DNA of 64,000 nt, from positions 83,231 to 147,230 of the forward strand of contig NW_003314265.1 of the NCBI RefSeq assembly GCF_000143415.4, written 5' to 3'. Made by a program: the position numbers and the translations under genes. The notes beneath the pieces were generated by a model. The model searched no databases and was not told the origin of the DNA. It saw only the letters and a program-made list of their open reading frames with translations. Within the stretch, counting starts at the first letter, position 1, and each line of letters starts with the position of its first letter. Origin of the DNA: Selaginella moellendorffii. Taxonomy: Eukaryota; Plantae; Lycopodiophyta. Shown piece by piece: positions 1-57,829 of the stretch.

Positions 1-33
1 TCGACCCACTTCTCTACGAAGCCCAGAATATAT

Positions 34-1186
34 GGAACTGGGCTGAGTGCTCGATGGTTCCAAGGAAGGAGGGGGAGTGGAAAGGAAGTGATTAGCAGTG
101 ACTCCGAGATTCGAAGTGGATTTTAAGATTGTTTCTCTTTTTTCACTCACTCCACTCACTTGGAGGAGAAGAGCTTACTTGAGAGGCGATAAGTAATTCT
201 TGACACTCGAAAGCAGTGTTCTTTGGGTCGTGCAGGATCGTATTTTTCTTTTCCTGAGGTGGAAATCCTACCTCGTGAAGTAGCTGCCAAAGAATCATGC
301 TCGTCTATCCAAAGAAAAGGGACTGTCGGTGTTGTCTCGTACCCTCTTAGACGACGATCTCAACAGGTTAGCGAGCAGCATTCTTTTTTTCACTCTGTGA
401 TGCTAAAAGCGATAGTTTTGTAGGCTTTGGATGCCATTGAGAGGCTGAGAGCAAACTCTGTAGCACTGCATACTTCTTTTTTGTGCTTTGCTTGGCGGTA
501 CTGATTTCTTTGTTTTTCTCTCCACAGCACTGGTTCCAACTCAAGGCTCGTTTCCGTTTGTGAGAATTCGAAGGACAGGCTGAGCACCTCACTGGTGGTG
601 AAGAAGTCCCAAGACGACGACTGGATTTCCGCGATCTCTGCCGCCTGGTCGCTTACCTTCTTGAGGATGAGCGAGAAGCTGTTTTACAGCGAATCATGCG
701 TGTATAGCGATAAAAAATACTCATGTTTTTTATTGGACTGAGATCAGATGTTTCCAATGTTTCCTGGCATGTGAAGGCGGTCCCGGTTGCGGTGTGGATC
801 ATCTGGTGGCCCCTTGCCTCCAAATTGTGCCAGTTTAATTCAGAGCTGCAAGTACAAAGCCAGCAATGATCTTACTAGCAAATGACCTTGCCATTACCTT
901 GTCAAGATCACACTCGAGGATACATTTGCATGAACCCCCCAGTGCACAGCCGAATTGTCTTGTTCTAGACGGCGTGGGGGTCTTGGTGGAGACAGGTAGC
1001 TCGAGAAAACTCCAGCAATGGAGTCATTCCTCCATCATCCTCGACCACGATGACGAAGCCCAGCATGTCTTGGTTGATCTCCCACATTTTTGCCACTGCG
1101 ACGTGATCCACGAGAATGTGGGCTTCGTCCCGTCGCACCCTATCAATGAAATTGCAATCGATCATACTTGTGCTGCGCGGATGCAT
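34..1186. repeat. Segmental duplication block A, copy 1 (unidentified genic-like sequence)
   Basis: Near-identical to 4747-5871; both start GGAACTGGGCTGAGTGC and share ORF fragments such as KKSQDDDWISA. Product not recognised. Confidence 0.85.
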
Positions 1187-2224
1187 TGTTTACTTTCCAA
1201 TATCAAACATAAACATTTGATCACGTTACTTAGTTTAATAAGTTTCAAGAGTTAAGGTCAAGAAGATTATATTTTTGGTATGGTATTGGCAATATCAAGC
1301 CTGGAAAAATCTGATATTCTAGGTGGTTGTCAAGTCTCGTGTATATTTGCATGAATCGCACATGTAACGTGTTGCCCATGGAACAGCTCTTTCAGTAGGA
1401 AGGACTAGGGCTTCTTTCTTTCCCACGAAAATTTAAAAAGAAGCGCGAAATTGGGTCGGGCGATTGCTCCGCCGACGCCCCCACCAACCGCAGCGATCTC
1501 CAACCGCGCGGCGCCGTTGGATCACGCCCTATCAGGAGCTGGAGCGGCTGGAAGAAGCTTTCGCCGCTCCCTTCTTTGCTTGATCGCCACTTTGATCTTC
1601 TTTTGCCGGATCTTCCGCCGCTGCTGGAGTTTCTTCCCCTGCTGCTTCGTCTTGAGTTGTTTTGGCCTCGGCTTTAGCTCTTCTTTGCCGTTCTCGTTCT
1701 TGGCACCGTGAACGTTGGATTGAGGAATATACGTGGCGGGATGTACGGCGTTCGCCCCGAAGAAGAAGAAGAAGAGGGATTCTTCGTTAGGTTCTATAGA
1801 GAAATTTGGAGCTTGTCGGGAAGAACAGTGGAAGAAGTAGAGATCTAGCTCCGGGCAGCTTCTAGGAACCGCAGGAATCGAAGGATGAGAGTCTCGCGTA
1901 GGGCTTGGTCGTGGTAGCGGCGTCTGGATCGATAGGAGCAGCCATGAATTCCAGGTGTAGAGTGGTGGATCACGACCGGCGGTGCGATAGAGGGCAAGAA
2001 CGCGAGATTACGGCGAGGAATCGCTTGTAGCAGGCCAAGGATTCGAGGCGAGAGATGCGTTACCAGCTGGGAATGGAGCGCTCCAAGCTACTCACGCTCG
2101 GCAAGCCCTCTCCCGAGAATCCAATGGCGATGCTGCCGGGGGCGGCGGCACCGGAGGATCGATCAAGCAGAACATCCAGGACATCGTGTGGTCCTTTATG
2201 TTTGGGGAAGTAGGAGCCGCCAGA
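1187..2224 (+). pseudogene. Duplicated upstream region and truncated 5' end of the ARM-repeat gene (source about 35440-36464)
   Basis: Matches the leader and first exon (MRYQLGMERSK...QDIVWSFMFG) of the gene at 36282, then breaks at GCCGCCAGA into AT-rich DNA. Confidence 0.9.
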
Positions 2225-2674
2225 ATATTATAGTATATTCTTTTATATTTTAATTCATATATCATTAAAACAAAACGTTTGTAGTTAGATAAAACTATCA
2301 TTTGATTTAATCTGATAAATATATCTTTATTCGGAAATTATTATAGGAAAATAATATAAGTATTAAAATTTTCAATTGATAGTATTTATTACAAGCTTAT
2401 TGTATTAATAATAATTTAATTATATTTTCAAATACAAAGTATGGTGTAAAAAATCTAAACATAATTATACATTTGCTTCTTTAAATAATAAAATTAGAAA
2501 CATATATTTAAAATATAATATAAAATTGATCATATATAAACATAATTATGCATTTGCATCTTTAAATAATAAAATTAGAAACATATATTTAAATATAATA
2601 TAAAATTGATGATATAAAATAATTTTATGTTAAAAAAGGAAAGAAATTAATGCAACATACAAGAAAATTATTTC

Positions 2675-3070
2675 TTATTTACAATTATCTTTATAATCTA
2701 GAAATTCAACAATAATTGAACCATTAACATGTTTATAACATCCTTCAAATGACCAATTATTCCAACCATGATCACCTTTTGTTTTATATTTTGCCCAGCC
2801 TGGAAAAACAACTAATTGATAAGGTTCTCCATTTACTCTAAAATCAACAATTTCTATTATTGGATTTGGATCTCTTCTAATTTCAAATGATAAAGAAGAT
2901 TTATATATAAAAACATTTACATCTCTGCCATGCATATTATAATAAATATCTAAATCACAAGTCATGAGTTTTTCCCAGGAAGAATTTGAACAATCAATAC
3001 CATCATTTAAATAAAGATCTATTAAAAATTGAAAGAAAAAAAAAGAAATATAAAATTTAAGAAAATACAT
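2675..3070 (-). CDS. Small putatively secreted Cys-containing protein, YvgO-like (copy 1)
   Basis: 131-aa intact ORF in very AT-rich DNA, with a hydrophobic N-terminus and the motif YQLVVF-x-KGDHGWNNWSFEG. A paralog at 9218-9610 is also intact. Confidence 0.6.
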   Translation of the reverse strand: MYFLKFYISFFFFQFLIDLYLNDGIDCSNSSWEKLMTCDLDIYYNMHGRDVNVFIYKSSLSFEIRRDPNPIIEIVDFRVNGEPYQLVVFPGWAKYKTKGDHGWNNWSFEGCYKHVNGSIIVEFLDYKDNCK

Positions 3071-3539
3071 AGTTAATGGTTAGTTCATTGTAGCTTTGTG
3101 AATAAATATAAATATAAACACATTATAAACTCAGCCAACAAATAATATAAATAATTCCCAAGATTTCTATTTTGTTTTATATGAGAAAAGATATTCCCTG
3201 ATATGAGCATATAATTGGCTATAAAATGTATTATTTCTTTTATATACCGTAACTTATCATTATGTCATTTAAATTAATATGGATAAGTTAGTTTGGTTTG
3301 TTTAATATAGTTCTAAACGTATTGTATAGCCATATGAAGGATGAAGACACCCAAGTCTAGTGTAACCTTAGTACCCAGCATAAGGTTGTGTGGCAATAAC
3401 TTTCCTCTTAAATTTAGCTACATGCTAAAACTTTAATAATATTATTGGGTTCATTAAACCACTGTGAAAATAAATCTTATATTTAATTATAATATAAAAA
3501 TATTTCAAATAGAATTTGAAAAGTTTATAAATCTTTCAG

Positions 3540-4053
3540 AATAGTTCACCACACATAAATTAACAATTCCAAGATATGCCATTGGAAAGAATTCCTTGAA
3601 AAACTAATAATTAAGTACATCTAAATAATTTCACCATATCTAGTAAATTTCTTACCTATACCCACAAATAATTATTGTAAATTAACATAATCTTTCTTGA
3701 GTAGTTTTACAAACTTGATGTTGCCACACATAAAAATAGTCCTCTATTTTAGAAGTTGAAGAAGCTTAATCACTATGTTTTTCATATCTTATTATAAGAT
3801 ATCATATAACTAGATTTGAAGAGGATTGTACATAAATTTATAAGTATTGCCTTTGTTGAATTTTACTTGAGAGTTGTTAATGATTTTTGTTTTAAGAATA
3901 ACACTACAATTAGTTTTTCATATTTATAATTTTGAATAAAATCATGATCTTTACAATAACTAGTAAAGCAATTGGTATTAAACTGGTAAAATGCATAATC
4001 TATCCTTTGATTGTGAGTATACTTTTTCTCCAACCAAAGCCTAGCTTTTATAT
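3540..4053 (-). mobile_element. Decayed Mutator-like (MULE/SWIM) transposase remnant, copy 1
   Basis: Minus strand reads NIKARLWLEKKYTHNQRIDY plus a degenerate CT*...FQGIL SWIM-like segment. Homologous to about 26040-26465. Confidence 0.45.
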
Positions 4054-4597
4054 TGTAGCGTACGTGGTTTTGACCCTTTATCCTATGGTGATTTACCATA
4101 GGATAACTATGAAGTGGAAACTAAACCCTTATTGTGCCACGTGACAGATGTTATGTGTCACATGCCATGTGTCCAAAAGATAATGATGTGGAACCTGAGT
4201 TTCAGGGCCTTGGGCCACTAAACGAAAGAACGGTGCCAAACTCCTAAGGAGTGACGGAATTGAACCACGGAGCAACTCCTGAGCATACAAGCCAAGGAGT
4301 GAAGGGACAGGTGGAGTGACTTGAAACAATCCTAGAGTATCTAGCATCCCAATGCTAAGATCAACATACAAAACGAAACCAAATGGAGTTTAACACTTTT
4401 TCAACATACCGGTAGCCTAACGTGAGGACATGGGTACTCCACCAGCTAGTATGGTGTGGAGTTTGGGTTTAAACCCAAGTTGAACGCAAAACAAAGACAG
4501 CCACGCAAACGGGAATTAAATTATGCCTCAGGTTAGTTAGCCATGCCCAACCTACCCACTATCCCTATTATACATTTGGAACCCCCCATACCCCATA
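4054..4597 (-). mobile_element. Truncated LTR fragment (related to 29885-30322)
   Basis: Starts TGTAGCG exactly where homology to the 26460 copy breaks. 4380-4480 is the reverse complement of about 30030-30130. Carries the shared GGGGTTCCAAA-GTATA-TAGGGATAGTG motif. Confidence 0.65.
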
Positions 4598-4746
4598 TAT
4601 ATTGGAAATGAAATATAAAAATGTGCATATCAATTACTACTAAAGGATTATCTACTTTTAGCACAAAATATTCTTGACACAAAACATCATACACTAAGAA
4701 TATACCTTCAAAGAATAGTCTACTGACAAAAATTGGCTGGAAGGCT

Positions 4747-6560
4747 GGAACTGGGCTGAGTGCTAGATAAGGAAGGAGGGGGAGCGGAAATGAAGTGATT
4801 GGCAGTGACTCTGAGATTCGAAGTGGATTTTAAGATTGTTTCTCTTTTTTCTCACTCCACTCACTTGTGCAGAGGAGAAGAGCTTACTTGAGAGGCAATA
4901 AGTAATTCTTGACACTCAAAAGCAATGTTCTTTGGGTTGTGCAGGATCATATTTTTCTTTTCCTTAGGTGGAAATCCTACCTCGTGAAGAAGCTGCCAAA
5001 GAATCATGCTCGTCGGTGTTGTCTCGTACCCTCTTAGACGACAATCTCAACAGGTTAGCGAGCAGCATTCTTTTTTTCACTCTGTGATGCTAAAAGCGAT
5101 AGTTTTGTAGGCTTTGGACGCCATGGAGAGGCTGCGAGCAAACTCAGTAGCACTACATACTTCTTTTTTGTGCTTTGCTTGGCAGTACTGATTTCTTTGT
5201 TTTTCTCTCCACAGCACTGGTTCCAACTCAAGGCTCGTTTTCATTTGTGAGAATTCGAAGGACAGGTTTAGCACCTCACTGGTGGTGAAGAAGTCCCAAG
5301 ACGACGACTGGATTTCCGCGAGCACTGCCGCCTACGTGGTCGCTTACCTTCTTGAGGATGAGCGGAAGCTGTTTTACAGCGAATCACGCGTGTATAACGA
5401 TAAAAAAACTCATGTTTTTTGTTGGACTGAGATAGATGTTTCCAATGTTTCCTGGCATGTGAAGACGGTCCCGGTTGCGGTGTGGATCATCTGGTGGCCC
5501 CTTGCCTCCAAATTGTGCCAGTTTAATTTAGAGCTGCAAGTACAAAGCCAGCAATGATCTTACTAGCAAATGATCTTGCCATTACCTTGTAAAGATCACA
5601 CTCGAGGATACATTTGCATGAACCCCCCGGCGCACAGCCGAATTGTCTTGTTCTAGATGGCATGGGGCCTGGTGGAGACAGGTAGCTCGAGAAAACTAGC
5701 AATGGAGTCATTCCTCCATCATCCTCGACCACGACAACGAAGGCCAGCATGTCTTGGTTGATCTCCCACATTTTTGCCACTGCGACGTGATCCACGAGAA
5801 TGTGAGCTTCGTCCCATCGCACCCTATCAATGAAATTGCAATCGATCATACTTGCGCTGCGCAGATGCATTACTACCTTCTGTAAAGACATGGAGCTTGC
5901 TTGAGTTGGAGAGCTTCCCGATGAAGCTTCCACTCCTTGACAGCTGCTAAAACTGACTCGCATCTTGCGTCGCGGACCGCGAATGGGGACAGGCTAGAAA
6001 AGCAAGATTGAAATGAAAATCGATTCAAGAAATCGCAAACCTGGGTGGGAGGCACAGCAGGATAGATAATCCTTTTTGGAGCCGACACTGGATCTTTGGC
6101 GAGCAATCTCCCTATGAATCGACATTTCGAGTGGGAATGGCCAAGTTGGGAGCGACAAGCCTCGGACCTGTAGTTTCCATGGCTTTACCATTAATAAAAG
6201 TCATTGATTTTGGACTACAAGGTCAACACTTTCAAAGTTTAGTCTCGATCAATTTCGCGGCACTATCCCCCTTCCAATTCTCCACCAAGTGGTGCTGCGA
6301 ACGTAGGAATTTACCAGTCTCCTTCCTGAAGATCGTTGCTGCAATCCCGATTTTTATAAGCTCTTTGTTTCCTTGCTCGCATCTGAAGTACACATAAACA
6401 TGTGAGTCCATGGCATTGGAAAGAAAGAAAGAAACAATGTTGTTACCTCTTCTGAGAGAGAGAGGCTCTGCCTCTCACTCGTCATTGTGTTGATCGTCGT
6501 GGTTTTTCCTGATCCAAGGGTTTTCGCCATACCTTTGTGTAATCTTTTAAAACCCTAAAA
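4747..6560. repeat. Segmental duplication block A, copy 2 (longer)
   Basis: 4747-5871 duplicates 34-1186. Genic-like composition continues to about 6560; the right boundary is approximate. Confidence 0.75.
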
Positions 6561-6999
6561 GGAATGAGAATAAATATCTAAAGCGATTATATGGTGATCT
6601 AAAACACTGTACCAAATATCACTTTTATTCAAGATTGAGAAGAGGTGGGAGCTATGGACATCGCAAAATGACTTCATTCATTCATTTAACATTTTTGTTT
6701 TGACTAGTTTATAAAGTTTGATTTGATGTGGAAGTTTTTTTCTTAAATAATAAAACTTCACAGTGGAACATTTTTGTTATTTCTCATATTTTTGTTCAGA
6801 AGTTTCAATGTTTGCTGCTGCTTTTTGAGCCAAATACAAACTTGCCAAGCGATGAGACTCAATTCTTCTTGGCTCGATAAATCCTGGAGTCTCATCCCAG
6901 AGATTGAGTACAAAATCTATTTTAAAACAATTTCTATTTTTAAATTGTTCTTATAAGATTGCATGTATTATTAGATTTTGGTGGACCCTTTTATGAGAA

Positions 7000-7425
7000 A
7001 AAGTATGAGCATGTTGAGCTCTCTGTTAGAAAGTGGAACATTCACAAGCAACCTACGATCATTCAAGAAAAACTTAAGAAACTCATACTGAGCTCAGCCT
7101 TTGTACAAATGAAGATGAAGAAATCACCGGTGACACTGCCACTCACAAAATCGCAAAGCAAAGGAAGGAGCTTCGAGCTGGTAGAGCGATTTAGTGCCGA
7201 GAAACTCCAAGCCCCAGAGGTAGGTGGAGCGTGCATTGCAAGTTGTCGACAGGATCATCGAGCTTAAAAGTCACAGACAGCGTCCTCGGATCCATTTTCC
7301 TCAGCGTCTCGGCTGCTTCAGCATCCACGAGCAAAGTGCGACGTAGAAAAATCAACACTGCCCAAGAGTGCCAAGGAAAATCTCTCCAGTGACAGCTACT
7401 TTGGCTCTGGAAGACGAGACAATTT
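7000..7425 (+). pseudogene. Fragment of the 3' end of the START-like gene
   Basis: ELVERFSAEKLQAPE matches 32560-32600 (+) and the last exon of the gene at 40188-42130 (-). Several small deletions. Confidence 0.85.
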
Positions 7426-7478
7426 AAGAGGAAAATGTTTAAAGTAGGGTTCTTCGGGTGGGCTTTGGCGGGAAGGCG

Positions 7479-7852
7479 ATGGGGAAGCCGGCCCGGAGCT
7501 TCGGTAAGGATCTCTCTCGATGCCGGTAGAATGCGGGTGTGGTCGACAAAGTGGACTCCTTCACGGAAGTTCTAGAGGAGGTGAAGGGCTTGTTTCACCT
7601 TCTAAACTTAACTCCTTTCATGTCCTTCACGTTCTAGATGTATAAGATGCTCAAGCAGAAGGAGGAAGCTGGTGAGGGCGATCGTTGCAAACAACAAGCT
7701 GCTGTTGCTCAACAATCCTGTGCATGACGGGAAAATATCCTTGCATTTCCCAGTTTCAAAGAGCTTGCTCCTTTCCTTACTACATTTCTCTTCACATCCA
7801 ACTTCTCAGGCGCTCTGTGAATGAATTACTGGGAGAACCTTCTAAAGTCTGA
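7479..7852 (+). pseudogene. Internally deleted copy of the At4g18490-like gene
   Basis: Exon 1/intron 1 are joined at GCGGGTGT|GGTCGACAAAG directly to the 3' exons, removing about 2.1 kb including both exon arrays. The AT-AC intron copy is retained (ATATCCTT near 7735). Confidence 0.85.
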
Positions 7853-8825
7853 GGTACTTAGTTTGTTTACTTTCCAACGTCAAACGTAAACGTTTGATCG
7901 CGTTACTTAGTTTAATAAGTTTCGAGAGTTAAGGTCAAGAAGATTATATTTTTGGTATGGTATTGGAAGGACGTGCTATCAAAAATATCAAGCCTGGAAA
8001 AATCTGATTTTCTAGGTGGTTGTCAAGTCTTGTGTATATTTGCATGAATCGCACGCATGTAACTACTGTTTACAACGTGGCAACGTGTTGCCCATGGAAC
8101 AGCTCTTTCAGTAGGAAGGACTAGGGCTTCTTTCTTTCCCACGAAAATTTAAAAAGAACCTCACAAAGACAAAGTGAAAGGAAAAGGAATGTTTAATGTT
8201 ATATCTCTAATAAATGCCAAACCATGTAAATACAAACGAGAGGGCGCGAAATTGGGTCGCCAACCGCAGCGAGCTCCCGCCGCGCGGCGCCGTTCTTGAC
8301 ACCGTGACCGTTGGATTGAGGAATATACGTGGCGGGATGTACGGCGTCTCCCGCTCCCCGGCGTTCGTCCCGAAGAAGAAGAAGAAGAGGGATTCTTCGT
8401 TAGGTTCTATAGAGAAATTTGGAGCTTGTCCGGAAGAACAGTGGAAGAAGTAGAGATCTAGCTCCGGGCAGCTTCTAGGAACCGCAGGAATCGAAGGATG
8501 AGAGTCTCGCGTAGGGCTTGGTCGCAGTAGCGGCATCTGGATCGATAGGAGCAGCCATGAATTCCAGGTGTAGAGTGGGGGATCACGACCGGCGGCGCGA
8601 TAGAGGGCAAGAACGCGAGATTACGGCGAGGAATCGCTTGTAGCAGGCCAGGGATTCGAGGCGAGAGATGCGTTACCAGCTGGGAATGGAGCGCTCCAAG
8701 CTATCACGCTCGGCAAGCCCTCTCCCGAGAATCCAATGGCGATGCTGCCCGGGGGAGGCGGCGCGGGAGGATAGATCAAGCAGAACATCCAGAAGGTTCA
8801 TGCTTGGGGCAGGAGGGCCGCCAGA
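7853..8825 (+). pseudogene. Second duplicated upstream region and truncated 5' end of the ARM-repeat gene
   Basis: Matches 35429-36464 with deletions, and ends at the same GCCGCCAGA junction as copy 1. Confidence 0.9.
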
Positions 8826-9217
8826 ATGTTATAGTATATTCTTTTATATTTTAATTGTTATACCATTAAAACAAAACGTTTGTAGTTAGATAACATTGTC
8901 ATTTCACACCAGATTTATATTTAAGCTATGTATTCGGAAATTATTATTCAAAAATAAATTTAATTATTAAAATCTTCAATTGATAATCTTTATTACCAGC
9001 TTATTGTATTAATAATTATTTAATTATCTTTTCTAATACAAAGTAAGTGTTGCTGTATGGTGTAGCAAATCTATAGTGCAGAACATAATTATACATTTGC
9101 ATCTTTAAATATTAAAATTAGAAATATATATTTAAAATATAATATAGAATTGATTATATAAAATAATTTTATGTTAAAAAAGGAAAGAAAGTATTGCAAC
9201 ATACAGAAAATTATTTC

Positions 9218-9610
9218 TTATTTACAATTACTTTTATAATCTAAAAATTCTACAATAATTGAATCATCATGTTTATAACATCCTTCGAATGACCAATTAC
9301 TCCAACCATAATCACCTTTTGTTTTATATTTTGCCGAGCCTGGAAAAACAACTAATTGATAAGGCTCTCCATCTACTGTAAAATCAAAAATTTTTATTAT
9401 TGGATTTGGATCTATTCTAATTTCAAATGATAAAGAAGATTTATATATAAAAACATTTACATCTCTGCCATAGTTATTATAATGAATATCTAAAGCACAA
9501 GTCATGAGTTTTTTCCAAGAAATATTTGAACAATCGATAACTTCATTTAAATAAAGATCTATTAAAAATTGAAAACAAAAAAAAGCTAAATACAATTTAA
9601 GAAAATACAT
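9218..9610 (-). CDS. Small putatively secreted Cys-containing protein, YvgO-like (copy 2)
   Basis: 130-aa intact ORF with motif KGDYGWSNWSFEG. Differs from copy 1 by substitutions and one in-frame 3-nt indel; four mature-region Cys are conserved. Confidence 0.6.
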   Translation of the reverse strand: MYFLKLYLAFFCFQFLIDLYLNEVIDCSNISWKKLMTCALDIHYNNYGRDVNVFIYKSSLSFEIRIDPNPIIKIFDFTVDGEPYQLVVFPGSAKYKTKGDYGWSNWSFEGCYKHDDSIIVEFLDYKSNCK

Positions 9611-12600
9611 AGTTAATGGTAATTTATGAGTAGCCTAGTGAATAAATATAGTCATAAACACATTGTAAACTCAGTCAATAAATAATATAAATAATTCTTT
9701 ATGTGAGGTCCAAGTGTACGACTACGATACTATATATTAATATTAGCATAGTGGGATTTTGGTAGCCATCAGATTGGTTTCAATCTGGACCACTCACTCT
9801 TATATATAAATTAGGGTTTTTAAGCTAATTGATATGCACATTTTTTGTATTTATATTCCATGCACTCATATTGGTGGAATTGAGGGGCACCTTTGATTGT
9901 CCTTGAGGAGTGCTTGGGATTTTGGTTTAGATGTAGCTTTTGTATTATCTAGATCTAGTTTTTTCCATTTCGTTTCTTTTGTTTTGTCCTTTCAGAATTT
10001 TGGTTTATATGTAGCTTTTGCATTGTCTAAATCTCCCTTTCTTTCTAGCTTTTTTTTCACCTCTCTTTTTTTTCTCTTTCCTTTTCATTCATCTTCATGG
10101 CAAATTAGTAGTTTCCTCCTTTTTTGATTGTGGAGTAACAGTTGGTGCAATTGCTTGATATTATGCAATTGCAAAGGATGATGTGTACTTGGTTTGATCA
10201 TTTCACAGTGATTGCCCCATATCATTCTTGGGATGATGTTAGATGTTTGTGTGAGTTTCCCACATATCTCCAAGGCACGGTGTTGCAATAGTACAATGGT
10301 TTGAGCATAGCCACTCATGGGGATTGGAGTGTTCTCCCAGACATCTTTAACTGTGCATTCGAACATGCTGACGATTGTGATGATGCTTTCTAACAATTAC
10401 ATCATCTTCGTCAAGGGCCATTTGAGTCGGTGATGCAATTTGGCATTTGTTTCCGAAGTTTCTTGCTTTATACAGAGCCAAATATGTTAGAGCGGATCAA
10501 GCTAGGAATATTGTGGCGAACACTTTGTCAAAATCTTGTTGGACTTCTACATGCATTTGCTCCAGCCGATGTTCTTTACTTGGCACAATGTTAGGAGACG
10601 TCACCTCTTCCACTTCTTGTTGCACGTCTTTCAGCTCCACTTCCTATGGGTGATAGTCCTGTTACAATAGAGGTTGATGCTGCTACTACTCAAGTCCAAA
10701 GATAAGGACAAGGATGTGGTCGTGGCCATGATGTTCATTGCTGAGTATGTCATGAAGTTAGTCACACTTATTAGCGTTGTTGGCATTTTCCATATTGGCG
10801 GCCACCATTTTCTGGGTGGAGACCTTGGTGTCAACAACGTTTTGTTGGTGCTGCTGCAGTGGAAGGTCTGTAGGGGGTTCCAAAAGTATAGTAGGGATAG
10901 TGAGATTTAGGAATCAATTTTGAAGGAACTCTCCAGTGGTGCTTTCAAACTGACTTGAGGTTAAGATTGGGGCTAAGGGGCCTTGGGTGGGAGTGAGCAT
11001 GGACTCGGGTGGTGCTGGAGGGGCCACCCAAGGAAGTGCTCAAGAACAACTCCCACTCTTGGAAGGGAAACCAATTGTGGTGATCCTAGCTCATGTGGAG
11101 TGGTGCCCCATTTGAGTACCTTGTGGCTCGTTGGTTCTCGCCCTTCCTAGAGGCTTGGGCCTTCCCTTCGGGAAGGAAGTGGGGAGGGGGGTAGAAGTAC
11201 CCATACTAGGTCGTTAGGCCATAGTGTTTCCCCCCGGCATCCCGAAGTGAGAGTTACACCCAAGATTTGGGATTTAGAGGGTCTTATGATTAAGTCTTGT
11301 TGTACCAAGGGATGTTAGGAACCTGGAAGCTTGGTGTACTTGGCTGCTTGTGCCTATGGGGAGTGTAGTTGAACCTTAAGTTTAGTCTAACCCGGGGAGG
11401 GGGATTGGGAGAGATTTGGGAATTCGTGGATGGATGGATAACGCTCCGTTGCTTGTGTAGTGAGTAGCTAAAACCAAATAGGACCAAGTAGGAGCTGGTA
11501 CAATAAGCGGGAACCTTGGCAAGGGAATTTAGCTAAAGCCAAGGCGGTGTTTGTCAGATAAACGACGTAAGCTGGCAAATTGGAAAAGAAAAATTTATGG
11601 CTTACAATTTGGTATTGGAGCATTTTCCTCAGTTCTAGCGAAGGATAAAGGCGGATTACTGGGAAATGGTAATGGCAGGGTGTAAACAAACCAAGACGGA
11701 AATAGAACGTCCTCTAGAGCTGGAGCCTCCGATTGAACAAAAACCTATGGATGAGGAATCTTTGCACGAGGAGGATTCTAGTGAGGAAACTTCCAAACAA
11801 GAGTCCAATAGTGAAGTTCGGTCGTCCAAGGCTCGATTGGATGTTCTAGAAGGACAATTGGCACAGACCAATGGCCTGCTGGAGACCCTCATATGCAAGC
11901 TAAAGTGTGACGAAACGGAAGAAAAAGCGAAAGATTGTAGATGCTGGCAGCGCAGAAGGTGCGGACCCTTCAGTGGGGACTGAGGCGGAACTAAACAAGG
12001 TCAAACAGACTGAAGTGGAATCAATCTCGCAAGCAGTTCCCAAGTACAAACCAAAGCCCCCACTAGTCTTCAAGGAAGTGAATGACTATAAGGTGGTGGA
12101 AGATTGGTTTTATGATATAGAGGACTACTTTCGAGCGTTACGGTTACCAAGCTCGGAGAAGGTTCCATGTGCAAAACCATACTTTAGCAGATAATGCTAA
12201 GTCTTGGTGGAGAACGACAAAGGCCAATGAAGGACCGGTGGCCACTTGGAAAATGATGAAGGCGAGGATCCGTGCGACTTACATTCCTCCGAATGTTACT
12301 CTGCACCTAAGGGATGAGCTAAGTAGGCTGAAGCAGACCAGAACCATTCAAGAGTATGTGAATGGGTTTATGACAAAGAGGATACTTGTCATGGATATGG
12401 GTGATATAGACACATTCCATGCCTTCATATCAGGCTTGCAAACCTGGGCTTGCGATAAGGTGATACATTGGAACTAAACAAATTACAAGGAAGTGTTAGA
12501 TGTAGCTATCAAGATGCATTTCAATGATAACCTGCGAAAGGGAAACACGACAGGGTCAAGGTCCACGTTTGGCAAAAGGGCCAAACCAAGGGGAACATAT

Positions 12601-12961
12601 GGCAAAAGGAAATTCAAGAAGAGTTTCTCTAAGAATGAGTCCTTGGGGTTTCGAAAAGGCAGATCCAAGGGCCAGCAAGCAAGTATGTGTGGGAGTCAAG
12701 CAAAAAAAGACAAACCCACGGATAAGAAACTCAAGTTTGCTAACAGTGTGGGAAACAACGTATGTTTCAACTACGGTGAAGCGGGACACTTTTTAAGGGA
12801 ATGTCTCTACTCGAAGAAGGCTAAAGCCCATATGGCCATTAAGTCGGGTGAAATCCAAATTGAGGTACGTGATCCAGTCCCTAACTCAAAATTACTCATT
12901 ACACGAGCAACTTTGGTAAAGAGTTGTTCACAACATTTACTAGCCCTCCGAGGGAAGCTCG

Positions 12962-14482
12962 TGTGAGACACAAAACCCCTTGGCCCCAAAGTGGAGCCAA
13001 AAGGGTGCCACGTGGTAGTGGTTGAAGCGAAAGCCAAATGAGTGTAACACATTTGGACTAAAAGCTCCGACTTGAAAGGTCGAGAGCGGGAGTGGAACTC
13101 CTAATAAAGTGCTTGAGGAATGAGCACGAAATGAGCAATAAGTGAAGCTCTAAAAAGGGACCCAAAAAGAACTAACATATGACACGTGGAAGTGTTCGAG
13201 ATGGACCCGAGGTGGAGTCCGAGATGGAGTCCAAGATGGACTCGAGATAGAGTCCAAGGTGGACCGAGATGGAGTCCAAGATGGACTCGAGATGGAGTCC
13301 GAGATGGAGTCTGAGATGGACCTGAGATGGAGTCCGAGATGGAGTCAGAAATGGAACTAAGATCGGGACCGAGACCGAGACCGAGTCTGAGTCTGAATCT
13401 GGGACTGAGATCGAGTCTGAGTTTGAGTTTGAGTCTGAGTCCGAGTCCAAATACTAATACAAGCAGTTGGGTGAAAGCCCAAAGCGATCATCCCGCAGGG
13501 GGGGGTGGGGCGGGGGGCTGCAGGGGGTTCCAAAAGTACAGTAGGGAGAGTGTGGGGGTTGAAGCCCAGTGGAGCCAGTTTGGCCAGGAAAGGCCAGTTT
13601 GGCCCAGGAAGACCATACCCAACTGTTGGGTAATGGGATGACCACTGGGAAGTCCAAGACTAGAGTGAATACGGACAGACAAGCAGGGTAGCTTGGTGAA
13701 GTGTTCAAGAGTCGGCTCTAGTTCCCCCGGGAGATCGAATGGTTGATGCTCCTAGTCCAAGTGTGGGTAGCACTACTTACTTGGATACTTGGCGTGGCTC
13801 AACAGAACCTCGCTCTAAGCCAATGGCTAGAGCACCCAAGGACGGAAGGCGGGGAGAGTACCCAAGTGGCTCGCGTAAGGCCATGGTGTTCCAAAATGTT
13901 GCCCCAAAGTCCCAGACGGTGGAAAAGAAGAGGAGCAGACATCTGGTGTACTGATTAAAGATATAGTCACATGGTGAGGAAGTCCTAGAGGACATTGGGA
14001 CTTAGTGGTCGGGCCGGTGGGCTTTGACCCAGTGCAGTGTTGGCGAACACGGCCATGTGTAGGAAAGGACTTGGTGGGGACTGAAAGAGGGATATTGGGG
14101 AAGGCTGTTCCCCTTGTCAGTGAGCATCCTAAGGATGCTAAGGAGTGGATCTGGGACGACCACTCATGGATGGTGGGCCCAGTCTTGGAGAGCCAAGACT
14201 GTGATGCAAGTGGTATTGGACTACCAGTGTGGCAAAGGTGATTGGGCATGGCCTTAGCGTAATAGGCTGTTATGTCGGTGGTACCTTTGAGTGTCGGTCA
14301 TGGGATCGGACACGTGGAGCACTGGGACCAGGTGCAAAAGTTGAGTGGCATGGATGCCATTCTCGGGGCTAGCAAATCCTAAGTCTTGAATTGGACTTAT
14401 GGAGGTTGTGAATGAGACTCTTCCAAGTGGTCGGAGGTGTGGTTAAGTGACTAAAGTAGAATGGAAAATTTAGTCACTTATA
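12962..14482 (+). mobile_element. Solo LTR, family 3, inserted at the start of the family-2 protease
   Basis: TGTGAGACAC...CACTTATA with a perfect 5-bp TSD GCTCG. Removing it restores LRGKLGGSFIKILIDTGA. Confidence 0.9.
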
Positions 14483-15036
14483 GCTCGGAGGTAGCTTTAT
14501 TAAGATCCTTATTGACACAGGTGCTTTGGATAATTTTGTGGCTGCAAACATAATTCGGCAAGCCAGACTAATGGTGCAGCGGCTGGGTGAATTAAGGACT
14601 ATAGAGTTTGTTCAAGGTAGCCAAAGCACCGATGAGGTACTTCGACAAGTGAAAGTCGAAGTAGGGACATGGAAAGTAGACATGAATTTAATCGTATTGG
14701 ACATGGCGGGATTTGACGTAATCTTTAGGATGGATTGGTTCAATCGATTTGTGGTAGCCTTGCATGGACAAGGTAGGAACCTTGTGGTATTGACGAATGC
14801 TCGGGGAGAACGATCTAGGGTGGAGGCCTAGGATCTAAAGGTAGGGCAATGTAAGGCCAAAAACTCTTGCTTAAACCTGGTGTCCACGAAAGGACAACTC
14901 ATTAAAGGAACCAAGGCAGCATTTTTATGCTTACTCTCAGTGAAAAGTGACAAAAAGATGGGAACGGAAGAATACCTTTAGTGATCCAATAGGTGTTCGA
15001 CCAATTCTAGGATACCATGCTAGAGGAGCTATTGGC

Positions 15037-15136
15037 NNNNNNNNNNNNNNNNNNNNNNNNNNNNNNNNNNNNNNNNNNNNNNNNNNNNNNNNNNNNNNNN
15101 NNNNNNNNNNNNNNNNNNNNNNNNNNNNNNNNNNNN
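15037..15136. other. Assembly gap (100 N)
   Basis: Run of 100 Ns; true size unknown. Confidence 1.
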
Positions 15137-20749: not shown

Positions 20750-23700
20750 TGTGAGTGCATGGAATATGGAAAGGGAATACAGAAATGTGCATATCAATTA
20801 GCCCAAAAACCCTAGCTTATATATAGGAGCGAGTGGTCCGGATTGAAACCAATCCGACAGTTACCAAAATCCCACTACGCTAATATTAGTATACGGCATC
20901 GTAACCATACATTTGGCCCTCATATCATCCCCTCCTCTCGGAATAATGGAAGACCATCAGGGTTCTCTTGTAGATGGGCCGGGATCTAGAGGAACATCAG
21001 AAGGAGGCATCAACAGATCTGTAGATGGTATTAACCACTCTTGATCCCTTTGTATGAAGCGTTTTAACCACTGCATATGCACAATCTCTGGAGGATCAGC
21101 CTGCTGGATGTCATGCCGAACCTCATAAACTTGTGGTCCAACTTGCCGCAACACCTGATACGGTCTTTTCCATTGTGCAAGGAGCCCCTTAGATAAACCA
21201 CGTACCGTAAGATGGGGAAAATGGACTAACACCAAATCATCCACTTTGTACTCCGCAGGTGGACGATGATGGGAGTTGTAGCGCCGTTGTTGTCCCACTT
21301 GTACACGGCCTAAGTGTTCAGCAGACTCCGCTCGGACAAGTGGAAGAATGCTAGTCAAATATTGATCCCATGACCTAGCATCCGCAACTCGTGGCAATCG
21401 CGAAGGTAAACTCAGCTCCGTTGGTAATATTGGATCATGACTATATAAGAGTTTATATGGTGAAGCACCAACAGAACTCTGCACCCTAGTGACATATGCA
21501 TACCGAAGAGACGGCAAATAACCATCCCAATCCGAATGCTGAAAGTTCACATACTTTACAATCATCCCCTTGAACGTTCGAACGAGCCATTCCACTAGAC
21601 CGTTTGATTGTGGATGATAAACACTCGTGAAAGTGTGGCGAATCCCCAACCGAGACATCAAAACATGAAATGCCTCAGCCATAAATGCAGGACCATTATC
21701 TGAAAGAATCAACTCTGGACAAGAATGTTGGAACACCACTCGATTGAGGAGGAAGTATCCAATAGCAGTTGCAAAGGCGCTAGCAAGAGCACCAACTTCC
21801 ACCCAACGAGTCAAATAGTCAGAAGCAATAATAACATACTCATTGCCAGCAGTCGACCGTGGAAAAGGTCCTATAAGATCAAACGCCACCAACTCAAATG
21901 GATGAAAAACTGCAATTGACTCCAACCGTTCTTCCGCAGCCCGAGGGGGAGTATTACAAGCTTGGCACCAAACGCAGCTACGCACATACCGGATAATATC
22001 ACGTTGCATCTCCGGCCAATAGAAAGACCTGCGTAACTTCTCGATTACACAGCAATGTCCCATATGCCCACCTAGAACAGGAGAATCATGGTAGGCATGG
22101 AGAAACCGCGGAATAAAGATAGAAGGCACCACGAGCCGTAAATGATCATCAGGATCTGTCATCACAAAATAAAGAAGGTCATCTTCAAGACAATATTGAG
22201 AATGTAAATGCCGGAAAAGCAAATCATCAGCAAGTGATGTAGGATTTTCAAACCCATCTCGAAGCCTTCGAATCCATGGCTCAATCTTTTGAGCCTCGTG
22301 AACCTCATCAAGCGAAGGTAGATCTTGCTCTGCACCTTGTGGACACTAAACGTCAAGGACAATAACCGCTGACAGCACAGAATCTTCGTCTAGAAAATCC
22401 ACAGATGCTAAAACGACAGGCTCATCAGAAACATGATAAAAGAGTGAAGAAGGAAGAGGAGCTCGAGAAAGGGCATCAGCATCAGCCATAGAACTCCCTG
22501 AGCGGTGAACAACATCAAAATCATATATCTGAAGCTTCAAAGCCCACCGAGCAGTACGACCAACCAAGTTCTTCCGCTTTAAAAACGAAGTAACAGTAGC
22601 ATGGTCACCTTCAAGTAACGTTCGAAAACCATGTAGATATGCATGAAGTTTCTCGAAACCCCAGACTGCTGCTAAACACTCCTCTGTCGTGGAGTAGTTC
22701 ATCTCCGCTGGTTGTAATGTACGGCTTATATATGCAATGGGATGGCACTGACCAGGCACACTCGAGCTCTTTTGCATTAACACACCTCCAAGACCAATGT
22801 CAGAAGCATCCACGCACAAAATAAAAGATCGAGTGTAGTCAGGATATGCCAAAACCGGAGGAGTTGTCAATAATTCTTTGAGATCCCCGAACGCCCGCTC
22901 ACAATCCGGAGACCAAATGAAAGATGACGTTGATGACTTCAGCAACGCTCGCAATGGTGCAGTGCGATCAGAAAGATGATCCAAAACATGCCCGAGATAC
23001 TGCACCTTGCCCAAGAAGTGTTGCACATCATTCACACACTTCGGAGTAGGGAACTTTAGAACAGCCATAAGTTTGTCAGGATCAACTTGCAAACCCTCAC
23101 GAGAAATACAGTACCCAAGATAAATTGTGTCCTTGGATCCAAACACGCACTTCGACCGCTTCAACTTTAAACCAACGTCGCGTAGCCGATCCAACACTTT
23201 ACAAACATCACGAACGTGCTCCTCCCACGTCCCCTGCGAATGGATCAAGACATCATCAATGAAGTCAGCAGTCACCTTCGGCATATCGCAAAGAACCTCG
23301 TCCATCATCCGTTGAAAAGTTGCTGGAGCATTGTTCAAACCAAATGGCATCACCAAGAACTCATACAAACCAAATGGTGTACGAAAAGCAGTCTTAGGAA
23401 TATCTTCTTCGGCCATCGGTACTTGCCAGTACCAGAAGCAAGATCTAGCTTGGTGAACCAACGACTTCGTCCCAGACGATCCAAGAGATCAGCAGTGTGA
23501 GGAAGAGGGTACACATCCGGGATCATTACGTCGTTTAACGGACGATAGTTGATGCAGAAACGAATACTCCCATCAGGCTTCGTCACAAGATGAGGTTCAC
23601 ATGCCCAAGGACTCCGCGACTTCCGAATAACACCCTTCTCCAACATCTCCTTGACATTTGCACATAAAATTTTGATCTCCTTTGGTGACCGATGATGAAC

Positions 23701-25755
23701 AGGAACCTTGATTGGACGAGCATCCCCAGTTGGAATCGGATGACATGTGGTAATCTTGGCTCCAGACGATAGGTCAAAGTCAAAGAGATCAGAATACTCC
23801 TTCATGAGCCGGTCAACTATTGCAACACAAAAATCGTCAGAGGGATCAGAAAAGGGAAGAGCAGAATAAGATGGAAATACAAGAGGAAATAGTGGGGAAA
23901 CAAAAGTAATGGAAGCAGAGGTAGAAATAGAGGGACAAAGAGGTATGGAAGTGAGAGGAATGGATGAAACATAAGGAAGTATGAGACAAAGGGGAGAAGC
24001 CTCAAAGTCACACTTGGCATGATTGCGTTGCAACCAATCCATACCAAGAATGAGGTCAAAAGCTTGATTCGGCACCACCCACAACGACTGCAACTCAAGC
24101 TCGAGATCGCCCACACGCACAACTAGGTCTGCCTCATCCCGTGCACATGCACGTGTATGGCCGTTACCATAAAAAATGAAAACTGGTTCCACCGTACGAC
24201 GCAAGTGTAGACGACAATGTGTGGCAACAGGTCAAGCAATAGAAGATAAACTTGAACCTGTATCAACCAACACGGAGAGAATAATAGGAGACCTCTTGTT
24301 ATAAAGACAAGCTTGGAAAGTAAACACTAGATGAACTGGTGCCAAGTGAACCCCTTGATAATACTCCCGAAAGAAAGATGGAGGGGTCACTGACTTATTC
24401 GCGCAAGGTCCCTTCGTTACTCGCGCGACTCCTCGTTTCCTGGATGCATCTCAGTGTCCAAACCTTCCATTGCAGCAGCACCAACAGGACGTTGCTGACG
24501 CCAAGGTCTCCACCCAGGAAATGGAGGTTGCCAATCCGGAAAACGCCGACAACACTGATAAGTATGACCAACTTCATCACATGCCTAGCATCAAACATCA
24601 CGGCCACGACCACGTCCTCGCCCTTGACCTTGGACTCGAGCAGCAGCAGCATCAACCTCCATTGGAACAAGACCATCACCCACAGAAAGTGGAGCTGAAG
24701 GACGTGCAACGAGAAGTGGAAAAGGCGATGTCTCATAACGTTGTGCCAAGCGAAGAGCATCGTCAAGGGTGGTGGGAGCAAGTGCATGCACAAGTCCGAC
24801 AAGATCTTGACGTAGTGTTGGCCACAACATTCCTAGCTTGATCTGCTCCGACATATTGGGCTCCGTACGAAGCAAAAGACTTCGGAAACGAACACCAAAT
24901 TGCATCACCAACTCAGATGGCCCTTGGCAAAGACGATGCAATTGTTGGAAAGCATCATCACAGTCATCGGCATGTCCGAAGGCGCATTTGAAGACATCCG
25001 GAAGAACACTCCAATCCCCATGAGTGGCTGCTCCCAAACTGTTGTACCACTGCAACGCCGTCCTTTGCAGACACGTGGGAAACTCATGCAAACGTCGAGC
25101 ATCATCCCAAGAATGATATATGGCAATCACCGTAAAGTGATCAAACCAATGGTACACATCATCCCCAGGATTCCCGTGAAAGAACTCCCGCCGAACGCGA
25201 GGATTGGCACCAAGAGCAAGAGGAGTTGTACCATATGCCGTGAACGCCGCCATCAACTGAGTTTAGTTGTTCAATTGCAAACGCATAGCATCAAGCAATT
25301 GTACCAACTACTGCTCTAGAGTCAGGAGGAGATTGCTGATTTGCCATGGAGACGAATGAAAAAAAAAAAGCAAAAGAAGAGAAATGACAAAAAGCTAGAA
25401 AGAAATGGTAGATCTAGACAATGCAAAAAGCTAGATCTAAACCAAAATCCTGAAAGAAAAGAACAAAAGAAAGGAAATGGAAAAGGCTAGATCTAGACAA
25501 TGCAAAAGCTAGATCTAAACCAAAATCCCAAATCCAAGCACTCCCCAGGGACAATCAAAAGTGCCCCTCATCTCCACCAATGTGAGTGTATGGAATATGG
25601 AAAGGGAATACAAAAATGTGCATATCAATTAGCCCAAAAACCCTAGTTTATATACAAGAGCGAGTGGTCCGGATTGAAACCAATCCGACGGCTACTAAAA
25701 TCCCACTACGCTAATATTAGTATATGGCATCGTAACCGTACACTTGGCCCTCACA
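20750..25755 (-). mobile_element. Full-length (about 5.0 kb) Ty3/gypsy retrotransposon, family 1, with frameshifts and stops
   Basis: 175-bp LTRs at 20750-20924 and 25581-25755, perfect 4-bp TSD GCTA, PBS TGGTGGAGATGAGGGG (tRNA-Ala-like), PPT GAGAGGAGGGGATGA. Order gag, PR (LVDTGSS), RT (FIDD), RNase H, integrase (ORF 20957-22222). No chromodomain seen. Confidence 0.96.
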
Positions 25756-28140
25756 GCTATAAAATATATTATTTCTTTTAGATACCCTAAATTATCATTA
25801 TTTCATTTAAATTAATATGGATAAATTAGTTTGGCTTGTTTAATATAGTTCTAAAAGTATTGGTAAGTCTAGTGTAACCTTAGTACTTTGCGTAAAGTTG
25901 TGTGGCAATAACTTTCCTTTTAAAGTTTAGTTACATGCTAAAGCTCTTAATAATATTCTTGGGTGTATCAAATCACTATGAAATAAATCCTGTATATCAT
26001 TATAATATAAAAATATTTCCAATAGAATTTGAAAGATTTGCCATTGGAAAGAATTCCTTGACCAACTAATAATTAAGTACATCTAAATAATTTCACCATA
26101 TCTAGTAAATTTCTTATCTATATGTTAACATAATCTTTCATGAGCAGCTTTATAAACTTGATGTTGCCACACGCAAAAACAATCCTCTATTGTAGAAGTC
26201 GACGAAGCTTAATCACTATGTTCTTCATATCTTATTATAAGATATCATATAGCTAGATTTGAAGAGGATTGTACATAAATTTATAAGTATTTTCCTTGTT
26301 GAATTTTACTTGAGAGCAATTAGTTTTTCATATTTATAATTTTGAATAAAATCATGATCTTTATAATAACTAGTAAAGCAATACTTCTCATAAACTTGGT
26401 ATTAAATTGGTAAACTGTATAATCTATCCTTTGTTTTCTCCAACTAAAGACTAGCTTGTATATTGGTATGGAACACCTTATCAGATTTATTTGTCAAATA
26501 AAAAGAATTTACATGTTAAAATAATGATTTACTTACCAAATTTCTCCTTCCAGTCATCTTAAAATACTTGATAAAAGCTTTTTCATCTTGAAAACCTATC
26601 TTAAAATGTTCAATAAGTTTCTTAAATTCAATTTTCATAATATTATCATTCTAAAAAGTTGTGTGAATCAAATAATACATAATATATTTCCATAAAGTGG
26701 CTCAAGGTTTCACCTTATAAATAATATGCTTGAGCTAGTGCTTTTTCTACTTTTACATATTCTTATTTCTTTACAAATTAGGGCTTCAGAATGTTGGCAC
26801 CATGGCAATCATTGGTTACTAGGGCTTTGTCAATGTAACAGAGCTGGCTCCATTAGGGTTCTACTTGATTGTTGGGGTAACTAATAAGGATCACTTTTAT
26901 TGTTATGTATAAATTGTTGTATAAAAGATAATGTCCATACCAATTTTAGCAATTGTAGATTGTAACTAATAGTGAGAGTAGCACTTATGATAGTAGATAG
27001 CAATAGTAGTGTAGAGATCAACAATGAGGACAAGATAGATATTCCTTCATTTGCAAATTGGAACGGATTAGAATCATAAAAGAGATATGATAGTGAAGTT
27101 TGTTTGACATTATCTTCTTTGTGATTGCAATTTAAAGCAAATAAGCCATGCATTAGGCACCACCCAATAATACTTTTAGACATTGCACCAATTTGGTTGG
27201 CATAAGGTTTATGTTCACAACAAATTGTAGCAAAGCTTCAAGAGCTGATCCCATTAGAGGCTGGTGGGATCAACTAAGGAGTCTAGAATATGCATAAATC
27301 ATTAAGTAAGTTTGTTTTAAAGTCTTCACCAAGAAAGTCTATGAGACATTTATCTTTGTCAACCTAAAAGGCTATGGAAGACGTTTCCTGGGTGATAGAT
27401 TACCAATTGTACAATATTACAGCCTCTATATATGTGTGACACATAACAGATTCTTCTAAATACTTTAATTCTAAAACACTTTTTTTTATTCCTCTAGTTT
27501 GGTGTAAATTAACACAATGAAACCTATGGGTTCATGGGTATTCCACTATATAATTATTATTGTTTTGTGCACTAATATATGAGAGGATACTATCTACAAC
27601 CTTTACACTTCAACAATAAGACTATTAAAGATGACTTTGCCAAATTTTATAACTATATCAAGGAAAACATAAATATTGTATGAGGTTTGAAGTAGAAATT
27701 CATTCATTCAAGGAAATTTCATATGTAATTAAGTAAGTTCTTCCTATTATCCACAATTTTTATATGACTTTTTTCCCATTTTATAAATGATAGAAATGTG
27801 AGTGTTTCAATCAGTTTTATTAGCATTTTCTCTAGAAGTTGGAATTTGAGTAATATTTTGATCCAACTAATCCTCTAGATTATCATAACTTTTCAAAGGT
27901 TTTTATACCAAAACTTGCTATAAGACAAGGACAATATATTTAAGTTTGGAATTGGTATAAAGTCTATGGATGTAAAAAGGGTGCCCATGCTATACTACCA
28001 CACATTCCTCAAGATTTGTGAAAGTTAAAGGAGTGAAAACATGAGTTTTGATAATACCTTTGATATTTTTTTTTGTTTTTTGTTTTTAATTTTAACATTA
28101 AGAATTTTATAGGATTATAAAATAATTGTGCTATTATCAA
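25756..28140 (-). mobile_element. Continuation of the AT-rich block: decayed Mutator-like transposase remnant, copy 2
   Basis: Resumes homology with 3218 onward. Minus-strand fragments FQDEKAFIKYFK, YLTNKSDKVFHTNI and HEPIGF resemble MULE motifs. Many stops; no TIR found. Confidence 0.45.
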
Positions 28141-28194
28141 TGGGAGGCAAATGTATCAACTAGTAGATATTTGTTGGCCAGTCCTTACGAACAC

Positions 28195-29884: not shown

Positions 29885-30322
29885 GAGGCTTAGGGTGAAA
29901 GCCCAAAGCATGTGTTCCTCAAAGGGGGTTTTAAATGTATAGTAGGGATAGTGATTGGAATGCATATCCGACCACCTGAGACATTAGTTTGGCTCTCACT
30001 GGGTTGTGTCGCTCTTTGTTCTGCGTCCAAGTTGGGTCTAAGCCCAAACTCCATACTACTTTAGTCGGTGGGGTATCCTCCTCCTCGTGTTAGGCTACCA
30101 GTATGCCAAAATTGTGTCAGACTCCATTTAACACCATTTTGCGTACAAGTGCTGGATACGAAGAGTTGGTGCTCATGGAATTGTACTAGACCTTTATTTC
30201 GTAGTGTAACCGGCTTGGAATTCGGCTCCAAATTCAAGTGCACTACACCCAATTCCCATTTAAACAAAAAGTATCAAGCTTTATGCCTATTGAAGGTAAA
30301 TGGATCTAAAGCTCAAACTTCA
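29885..30322 (+). mobile_element. Truncated LTR fragment
   Basis: Contains GGGTGAAAGCCCAAAG and GGGGGTTTTAAATGTATAGTAGGGATAGTG; homologous to 4054-4597. Ends approximate. Confidence 0.65.
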
Positions 30323-35428: not shown

Positions 35429-36281
35429 GGTGCTTGGTTTGTTTACTGTCCAACGTCAAACGTAAACGTTTGATCGTGCTACTTAGTTTAATAAGTTTCG
35501 AGAGTTAAGGTTAAGAAGATTATATATTTTGGTATGGTATTGGCAGGACGTGCTATCAAAAATATCAAGCCTGGAAAAATCTGATATTCTAGGTGGTTGT
35601 CAAGTCTTGTGTATATTTGCATGAATCGCACGCATGTAACTACTGCTTACAACGTGGCAACGTGTTGCCCATGGAAGGACTAGGGCTTCTTTCTTTCCCA
35701 CGAAAATTTAAAAAGAACCTCACAAAGACAAAGTGAAAGGAAAAGGAATGTTTGATTTGAAACTAATGTTATATCTCTAATAAATGCCAAACCATGTAAA
35801 TACAAAAGAGATGGCGCGAAATTGGGTCGGGCGATCGCTCCGCCGACGCCCCCACCAACCGCAGCGATCTCCCGGCGCGCGGCGCCGTCGGATCACTCCC
35901 TCTTGGCACCGCGACCGTTGGATTGAGGAATATACGTGGCGGGATGTACGGCGTCTCCCCGCTCCCAGGCGTTCGCCCCGAAGAAGAAGAAGAAGAAGAA
36001 GAGGGATTCTTCGTTAGGTTCTATAGAGAAATTTGGAGCTTGTCCGGAAGAACAGTGGAAGAAGTAGAGATCTAGCTCCGGGCAGCTTCTAGGAACCGCA
36101 GGAATCGAAGGATGAGAGTCTCGCGTAGGGCTTGGTCGCGGTAGCGGCATCTGGATCGATAGGAGCAGCCATGAATTCCAGGTGTAGAGTGGGGGATCAC
36201 GACCGGCGGCGCGATAGAGGGCAAGAACGCGAGATTACGGCGAGGAATCGCTTGTAGCAGGCCAAGGATTCGAGGCGAGAG

Positions 36282-57560: not shown

Positions 57561-57829
57561 TTGTAGTTGAACAATTATGTAAGTACCTAAAAAGAACAAC
57601 CCGAAAGACGATCCATAGGGTTCAAATATAAAGAGAAAGAGCCTATAAATAAGAGTGCATTCCCTTTTCCAATTGGTTAAGAGTTCTTAAAATATTTAAG
57701 ATTAAGTATCCTTCGGTTTAAATAATACTAGGCTTTTTCAATTCGTTAAGGGTTTTTAAGTGTCTTTAGGTTTGAATAATGCTAAATTAGGTAGTCCAAA
57801 CTCTGGAGAGTACACTTGATATCAAAGGG

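Follow-up and report, generated by a model that had tools for sequence, protein, structure and literature searches.

We consider it probable (about 0.6) that the Selaginella moellendorffii DNA analysed here, a stretch of 64,000 nucleotides which is called the window in the following, carries a locally duplicated intronless nuclear gene for a diverged, cysteine-bearing protein of the YvgO family. The mature protein would have ~107 residues and would be a secreted antimicrobial if it is expressed. Outside this plant, members of the YvgO/DUF7888 family are seen in bacteria, and fungi have proteins that resemble them in fold. The pair of genes adds to this known family and is not a new kind of protein. 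In the initial annotation the locus was presented as the best candidate in the window for an undescribed system. This has to be narrowed to a single small gene which belongs to a known family (Pfam PF25411/DUF7888) and for which no reads were found in three RNA-seq runs.

The features of the window are collected in Table 1. Copy 1 had been described as an AT-rich, intronless ORF of 131 aa with a hydrophobic N-terminus and four cysteines in the mature region, and this was confirmed by direct reading of the sequence and by its composition. The ORF has a GC content of 24% (9% at third codon positions), compared with ~47% GC for the window and 45-50% for the neighbouring kilobases. The cysteines of the mature part are C27, C38, C111 and C130. 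The motifs listed before for this protein (KLM, NVFIY, GEPYQLVVF, KGDHGWNNWSFEG and VEF) are all found in copy 1. The first ~20 residues are hydrophobic with a single Lys close to the start, and the presumed cleavage region shows no clear -3/-1 pattern. A second intact copy, which is absent from the initial annotation, is also located in the window. The core motif reads TKGDHGWNNWSFEG in copy 1 and TKGDYGWSNWSFEG in copy 2. The two copies are 82% identical at the amino-acid level and 91.6% at the nucleotide level, and they differ by a single 3-bp indel, which is in frame. No third copy was detected in the window by tblastn.

Table 1. Coordinates of the two YvgO-like open reading frames and of the surrounding features, given as positions in the window.
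Feature	Position	Strand	Basis or remark
Copy 1: YvgO-like protein	2675..3070	minus	intronless ATG-to-stop ORF, 131 codons + stop; profile match
Copy 1, codons 1-24: hydrophobic Phe-rich N-terminus	2999..3070	minus	putative signal peptide or membrane anchor
Copy 1, codons 25-131: YvgO/DUF7888-like domain	2678..2998	minus	one helix, then beta-sheet (predicted)
Copy 2: paralogous intact ORF	9218..9610	minus	130 codons
AT-rich island 1 (holds copy 1)	2153..4116		GC 24%, CpG observed/expected 0.32
AT-rich island 2 (holds copy 2)	8768..10126		GC 27%, CpG observed/expected 0.38
AT-rich islands 3-6	25688-28236, 30227-32287, 55484-57731, 58468-60230		no copy of the gene
Duplicated block	1186..3157 = 7863-9697		window self-blastn; GC-rich gene-fragment flank and AT-rich part with the ORF
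Further duplicated block	33-1187 = 4746-5871		window self-blastn
GC-rich/AT-rich breakpoint	2207..2225		three-copy alignment; GC-rich fragment adjoins island 1
Ty3/gypsy gag and aspartic protease	11666-14831 (domains ~12.2-14.8 kb)	plus	Pfam
Assembly gap, 100 N	15037-15136		
Ty3/gypsy protease, RT, RNase H, integrase	20957-25256 (domains ~21-24 kb)	minus	Pfam
zf-RVT remnant	28579-29862		Pfam
Intronless PPR frame, 603 codons	51635-53446	minus	Pfam

For the assignment to YvgO, searches with the single sequences were of little help. No matches were obtained for either copy in Pfam and NCBIfam scans, no relative was found by phmmer among the PDB sequences or by a word-indexed search of 5.8 billion proteins, and a search of the ESM Atlas by language-model features returned no entries. 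Bacterial genomes were also searched with patterns drawn from the putative signal peptide, and nothing was found. When 1.84 billion representatives were searched exhaustively with phmmer, the sole match was a repeat-rich T9SS surface protein of Bacteroidota (E 9e-4). This match was rejected as spurious, since five repeats add up to its score and the only Pfam domain above threshold in this protein is CHU_C.

A set of YvgO proteins was obtained by searching bacterial genomes, one for each species, for DNA able to encode K-G-D-x-G-W-x-N-W, which is common to both plant copies. The search revealed 117 loci, compared with ~35 expected by chance as estimated from the specificity of the pattern, and by manual count more than half of the 117 loci belong to one family. 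Among its members are secreted proteins of 154-180 residues from the Bacillus subtilis group, Paenibacillus, Brevibacillus, Streptomyces and cyanobacteria, and it also includes C-terminal domains of large proteins of Promicromonospora and Streptomyces. The database label of the retrieved proteins is "stress response protein YvgO", Pfam PF25411 (DUF7888). With an HMM built from 31 YvgO-type ORFs, copy 1 scored 33.5 bits and copy 2 scored 38.0 bits, and none of 4000 shuffled sequences exceeded 7.0 bits. As the YvgO set had been retrieved by the query's own motif, the test was repeated with the motif anchored, so that the seed motif was kept fixed and only the mature flanks were shuffled. The anchored shuffles gave a mean of 9.8 bits and a maximum of 26.2 bits, and none of the 5000 reached the real scores. 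Thus, the sequence outside the motif contributes ~24-28 bits, independent of the route of retrieval. Masking of the motif with X left only 3.7-4.0 bits; this control was discarded because HMMER penalises X in conserved columns, and the anchored shuffle was used instead.

An alignment of the two copies with 14 YvgO proteins by hhalign gave a probability of 94.7% and an E value of 5.6e-8 over residues 40-115. The joint alignment is colinear across the mature domain. Among the 23 columns which are invariant in 13 bacterial members, 14 are identical in the plant copies and three further ones show conservative changes (Y/F, F/Y, R/H). Neither copy matches the local version of the family model (PF25411.1). 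Genuine YvgO proteins of Bacillus, Paenibacillus and Streptomyces score only 12-15 bits with this model, compared with the cut-off of 27 bits, so that a negative result with PF25411.1 says little about membership; the precomputed PF25411.3 in the database covers the bacterial YvgO proteins. Judged by these sequence comparisons, both ORFs are true but very distant members of the YvgO family, with 18-26% identity to the sampled bacterial members. The YvgO-like identity proposed in the initial annotation is therefore backed by the HMM scores, the anchored shuffles and hhalign, and the Bacillus motif quoted there matched real genes.

The opposite assumption would be that copy 1 is a chance frame which resembles YvgO only through a short motif that arose by coincidence. 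It could draw on the single-sequence searches, which gave no true relative, and on the retrieval of the YvgO family by the query motif itself. However, the flanks outside the motif add to the score, as described above, and no anchored shuffle reached it. Moreover, an ATG frame of at least 130 codons occurred anywhere in the six AT-rich islands in only 9 of 1000 dinucleotide-preserving shuffles, and a frame of 131 codons is thus not expected by chance. The frame has also been kept in both diverged copies. A chance frame is refuted by the anchored shuffles and the island shuffles, and its probability is practically nil.

The fold of copy 1 was predicted with AF2 from an alignment of 30 sequences made of YvgO proteins. 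The model shows a helix followed by a beta-sheet (pLDDT 76.6, pTM 0.67) and, at low confidence, an N-terminal helix at residues 4-20. In a model built from the single sequence, residues 73-122 have the same strand pattern, also at low confidence. The best match to the AF2 model in the ESM Atlas was a PF25411 "stress protein" cluster of actinomycetes (TM 0.66, 102 residues, 2.2 A); two clusters of Basidiomycota came next (TM 0.59-0.61, 96-100 residues). The structural agreement with YvgO is partly built in, since the alignment for the model consisted of YvgO proteins. In the PDB, Foldseek and VIA-align gave no credible fold match to the model (best Z 4.7). The structure prediction and comparison suggested in the initial annotation thus point to PF25411 as the closest Atlas cluster, with no credible counterpart in the PDB.

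In addition, we analyzed the genomic setting of the two copies. A Pfam scan of 20 ORFs of the window revealed Ty3/gypsy domains, zf-RVT, PPR and CTC1. The PPR gene, the CTC1 exon and the gypsy elements identify the window as plant nuclear DNA. The closest relatives of the PPR frame are PPR proteins of Selaginella moellendorffii, followed by Diphasiastrum and Ginkgo, with an identity of only 30-36%; this search by itself places the window only among land plants. Exact-sequence look-ups of both YvgO-like copies, the PPR ORF and the CTC1 ORF gave no entries. The PPR frame, whose exact sequence is absent from the protein collection, may be unannotated or may belong to an assembly which the collection does not cover.

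Six AT-rich islands were identified in the window, with a GC content of 24-31% and a CpG observed/expected ratio of 0.04-0.38, compared with 0.85 elsewhere in the window. The depletion of CpG fits methylation and deamination over a long time. The YvgO-like gene is present in only the first two of the six islands, and there is no other island frame of more than 100 codons. The right part of island 1 (3218-3972) is repeated without the gene in island 3 (25756-26382). The GC-rich left flank of copy 1 (~1400-2225) duplicates an expressed locus which is found at ~35.4-36.5 kb. All three versions of this flank can be aligned as far as the breakpoint given in Table 1; beyond it, copies 1 and 2 continue as AT-rich sequence and the third stays GC-rich. 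Together with the two duplicated blocks, these alignments indicate that the two gene copies arose by a rearranged local segmental duplication (~6.6 kb) in which the GC-rich flanks were included. The partial copies of the locus at 35439-36458, which are located at 1186-2225 and 7863-8840, are unexpressed and each of them adjoins an AT-rich island.

A very high-copy element is located at 4001-4600. The summed depth of DNA contigs exceeds 50,000 there, compared with 10-60 in the neighbouring bins, and some contigs link this region to CCCTAAA-type repeats, which resemble plant telomeres. Rfam gave no matches for 1-11000, which includes this region.

The initial annotation had regarded the gene as horizontally acquired. 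The phylogeny which was suggested there was calculated for a set limited to the plant pair and 70 bacterial domains. In this tree, the two plant copies group together outside all sampled bacterial domains, separated by a branch of ~4.5 substitutions per site, and do not nest within any of them. Copy 1 has the same GC content as the island of ~2 kb around it, and four of the six islands do not hold the gene. The AT-richness is thus a property of the CpG-depleted island as a whole and does not mark the gene itself as foreign. Horizontal acquisition was therefore not shown: the pair nests in no bacterial clade of the tree and the AT-richness belongs to the island.

A recent transfer from a bacterium, or a bacterial contamination of the assembly, would agree with the absence of introns and with the best 120 matches of the profile search, all of which are bacterial, so that among these matches the family outside the plant lineage is only bacterial. 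But the low identity applies to every sampled bacterial member, and the outside branch is very long. The composition fits the surrounding plant island and not a bacterial genome. The cysteine pairs are of eukaryotic style, and the bacterial members lack them. Furthermore, the ORF sits between plant repeats on one contig, and in a separate DNA run one contig (2164-2518) spans the GC-rich/AT-rich junction and other contigs cover the ORF of copy 1, so that it is not a contaminant of the assembly. Recent transfer is already largely refuted and seems extremely improbable. An ancient transfer from microbes is possible. In our preferred reading of a duplicated nuclear gene, the first origin would be either such an old transfer or an old inheritance with loss elsewhere, and the gene would have been resident long enough to take on the surrounding base composition.

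An association with a Mutator-like element had also been proposed. No inverted pairs of at least 30 nt which bracket island 1 or island 2 were found in 1-11000, and no MULE, DBD_Tnp_Mut or SWIM domains were detected by Pfam in the 20 ORFs, a scan which short or spliced remnants could escape. The link to Mutator is therefore unsupported, and the ordinary flanks were duplicated together with the gene. More generally, the gene might be the cargo of a mobile element (Mutator-like, Helitron or an integrated virus) and be intact through recent spread of this element. The repetition of a part of island 1 at 25.7-26.4 kb would fit such a spread. However, the islands lack surrounding inverted repeats, no MULE or other DNA-transposase domain is present in the scanned ORFs, and no other long ORF occurs within the islands. 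The GC-rich, host-like flanks are duplicated in both copies, which fits a segmental duplication and not a transposition. The copies have diverged by 8-16%, so that the duplication is not recent. Overall, mobile-element cargo appears very unlikely. A fragment of a giant virus or of another virus was considered separately and was dropped, as no relative was found in 2.9 million viral contigs and no match in viral fold libraries.

Expression was analyzed in three RNA-seq runs of one study with the same species label (~1.4 Gb read per run). Not a single RNA read of these three runs was located at 2401-7000. The RNA-seq mapping that had been recommended thus gave zero reads at copy 1 in three runs of one study. 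In this part of the window, reads were present only at 1401-2200. They are 95-99% alike with fixed differences, and from 2207 on their unaligned ends follow the sequence found at 36436; these reads therefore come from the paralogous locus. The direction of the reads at 1401-2200 switches near 1800. Three silent samples from one study are compatible with conditional expression, which may apply here. The CpG-depleted, retrotransposon-rich setting looks silenced.

Selection on the gene was examined by comparison of the two copies. The dN/dS ratio is 0.78, a value derived from no more than 7.5 synonymous changes. Within the ORF, 8.4% of the sites differ between the copies, compared with 15.9% in both flanks (identity 91.6% versus 84%; Fisher p 7e-4), and the single in-frame indel of the ORF compares with nine gap openings in the flanks. 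Despite the extreme AT pressure, both copies have retained all cysteines and every Trp codon of the core motif, together with 14 of the 23 family-invariant columns. The chance that both frames stay open under neutral substitution was estimated at 0.06-0.13. This pattern corresponds to weak purifying selection or to a recent relaxation, and selection is at best weak.

These data bear on the question of whether both copies are decaying relics of a once-functional, silenced YvgO-like gene whose frames are still open by luck. Zero RNA reads, a dN/dS ratio of 0.78 and the CpG-depleted islands within a retrotransposon-rich stretch all speak for relics, and the neutral chance of two open frames is not tiny. 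On the other side, the divergence of the ORF is half that of both flanks (p 7e-4), the sole indel is in frame, and the four cysteines, the core-motif Trp and the 14 invariant columns are kept in both copies. We regard decaying relics as possible, but rather unlikely. A stronger version of a functional gene would be an anciently acquired antifungal family of bacterial or fungal type which multiplied in the lycophyte lineage and is under selection as a set of intronless genes in AT-rich islands. These genes would stay silent until an attack, for example by fungi or oomycetes, or in all but one cell type, and would form an unannotated family of plant defence proteins. This scenario is doubtful.

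For the reading given at the outset, a secreted protein of the YvgO family, the following mode of action can be assumed. The hydrophobic N-terminus would direct entry into the secretory pathway, where the four cysteines would pair as two disulfides and stabilise the domain of helix and beta-sheet. The mature protein of ~12 kDa would act outside the cell as an antimicrobial of the YvgO type, probably an antifungal one, by analogy to the bacterial protein described below. Expression, if there is any, would be conditional.

If the gene works, an early-diverging vascular plant would have a microbial-type secreted antifungal protein among its defences, and the pair would be a clean case for studying the entry of such genes into plant genomes and their persistence there. 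If it is a relic, it illustrates that short frames without introns escape the gene annotation of this genome when they lie in AT-rich DNA, and that such frames can stay open for a long time. The YvgO family is without a solved structure and its mechanism is unknown, so that every member suitable for assays is of value. The plant protein is small and predicted to bear disulfides, and it would be easy to express and assay. In the literature, no paper was found that mentions DUF7888 or that ties YvgO to the plants' own genomes.

The bacterial protein used for comparison is YvgO of B. thuringiensis SF361. According to PMC8703302 and PMC9755354, which both cite Manns et al. (2015), it is secreted and has a reported broad antifungal activity with an unknown mechanism. 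The probable antifungal action of the plant protein is extrapolated from this one bacterial member. Other bacterial proteins combine the YvgO domain in different ways: P0002 has two such domains in tandem, in P0105 the domain is fused to a CVNH lectin domain, and in P0090 it is joined to a beta/gamma-crystallin domain. The fusions to the CVNH lectin and the beta/gamma-crystallin domain fit an extracellular role, perhaps a glycan-directed one, if the plant protein can be judged by analogy. In Promicromonospora and Streptomyces, proteins of 500-850 residues carry a C-terminal YvgO-like domain. These large actinomycete proteins have no other Pfam domain and therefore give no hint of a function.

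Like YvgO of Bacillus, the plant protein is small, with a putative N-terminal export signal which is followed by a colinear domain of ~95 residues. Both share the elements G..NV..[FY], ..Y.[IL].VF.G, KGD.GW.NW.F.G and a C-terminal V.F, and the same fold of helix plus sheet is predicted. The clusters of Basidiomycota in the Atlas are also similar; they are eukaryotic, of similar size (~172 aa) and have the same predicted fold, in a comparison by shape alone. The plant copies differ from the bacterial YvgO proteins by the lack of the amphipathic N-terminal segment "DVLGIA..." and of the long linker. The second Gly of KGDGGW in bacterial YvgO is replaced by His or Tyr. The amino-acid make-up of the plant protein is driven by the GC content of 24%, unlike that of YvgO. 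The plant copies reside in a plant nuclear genome with no expression seen, in contrast to bacterial YvgO, and they carry four conserved cysteines which are absent from YvgO of Bacillus.
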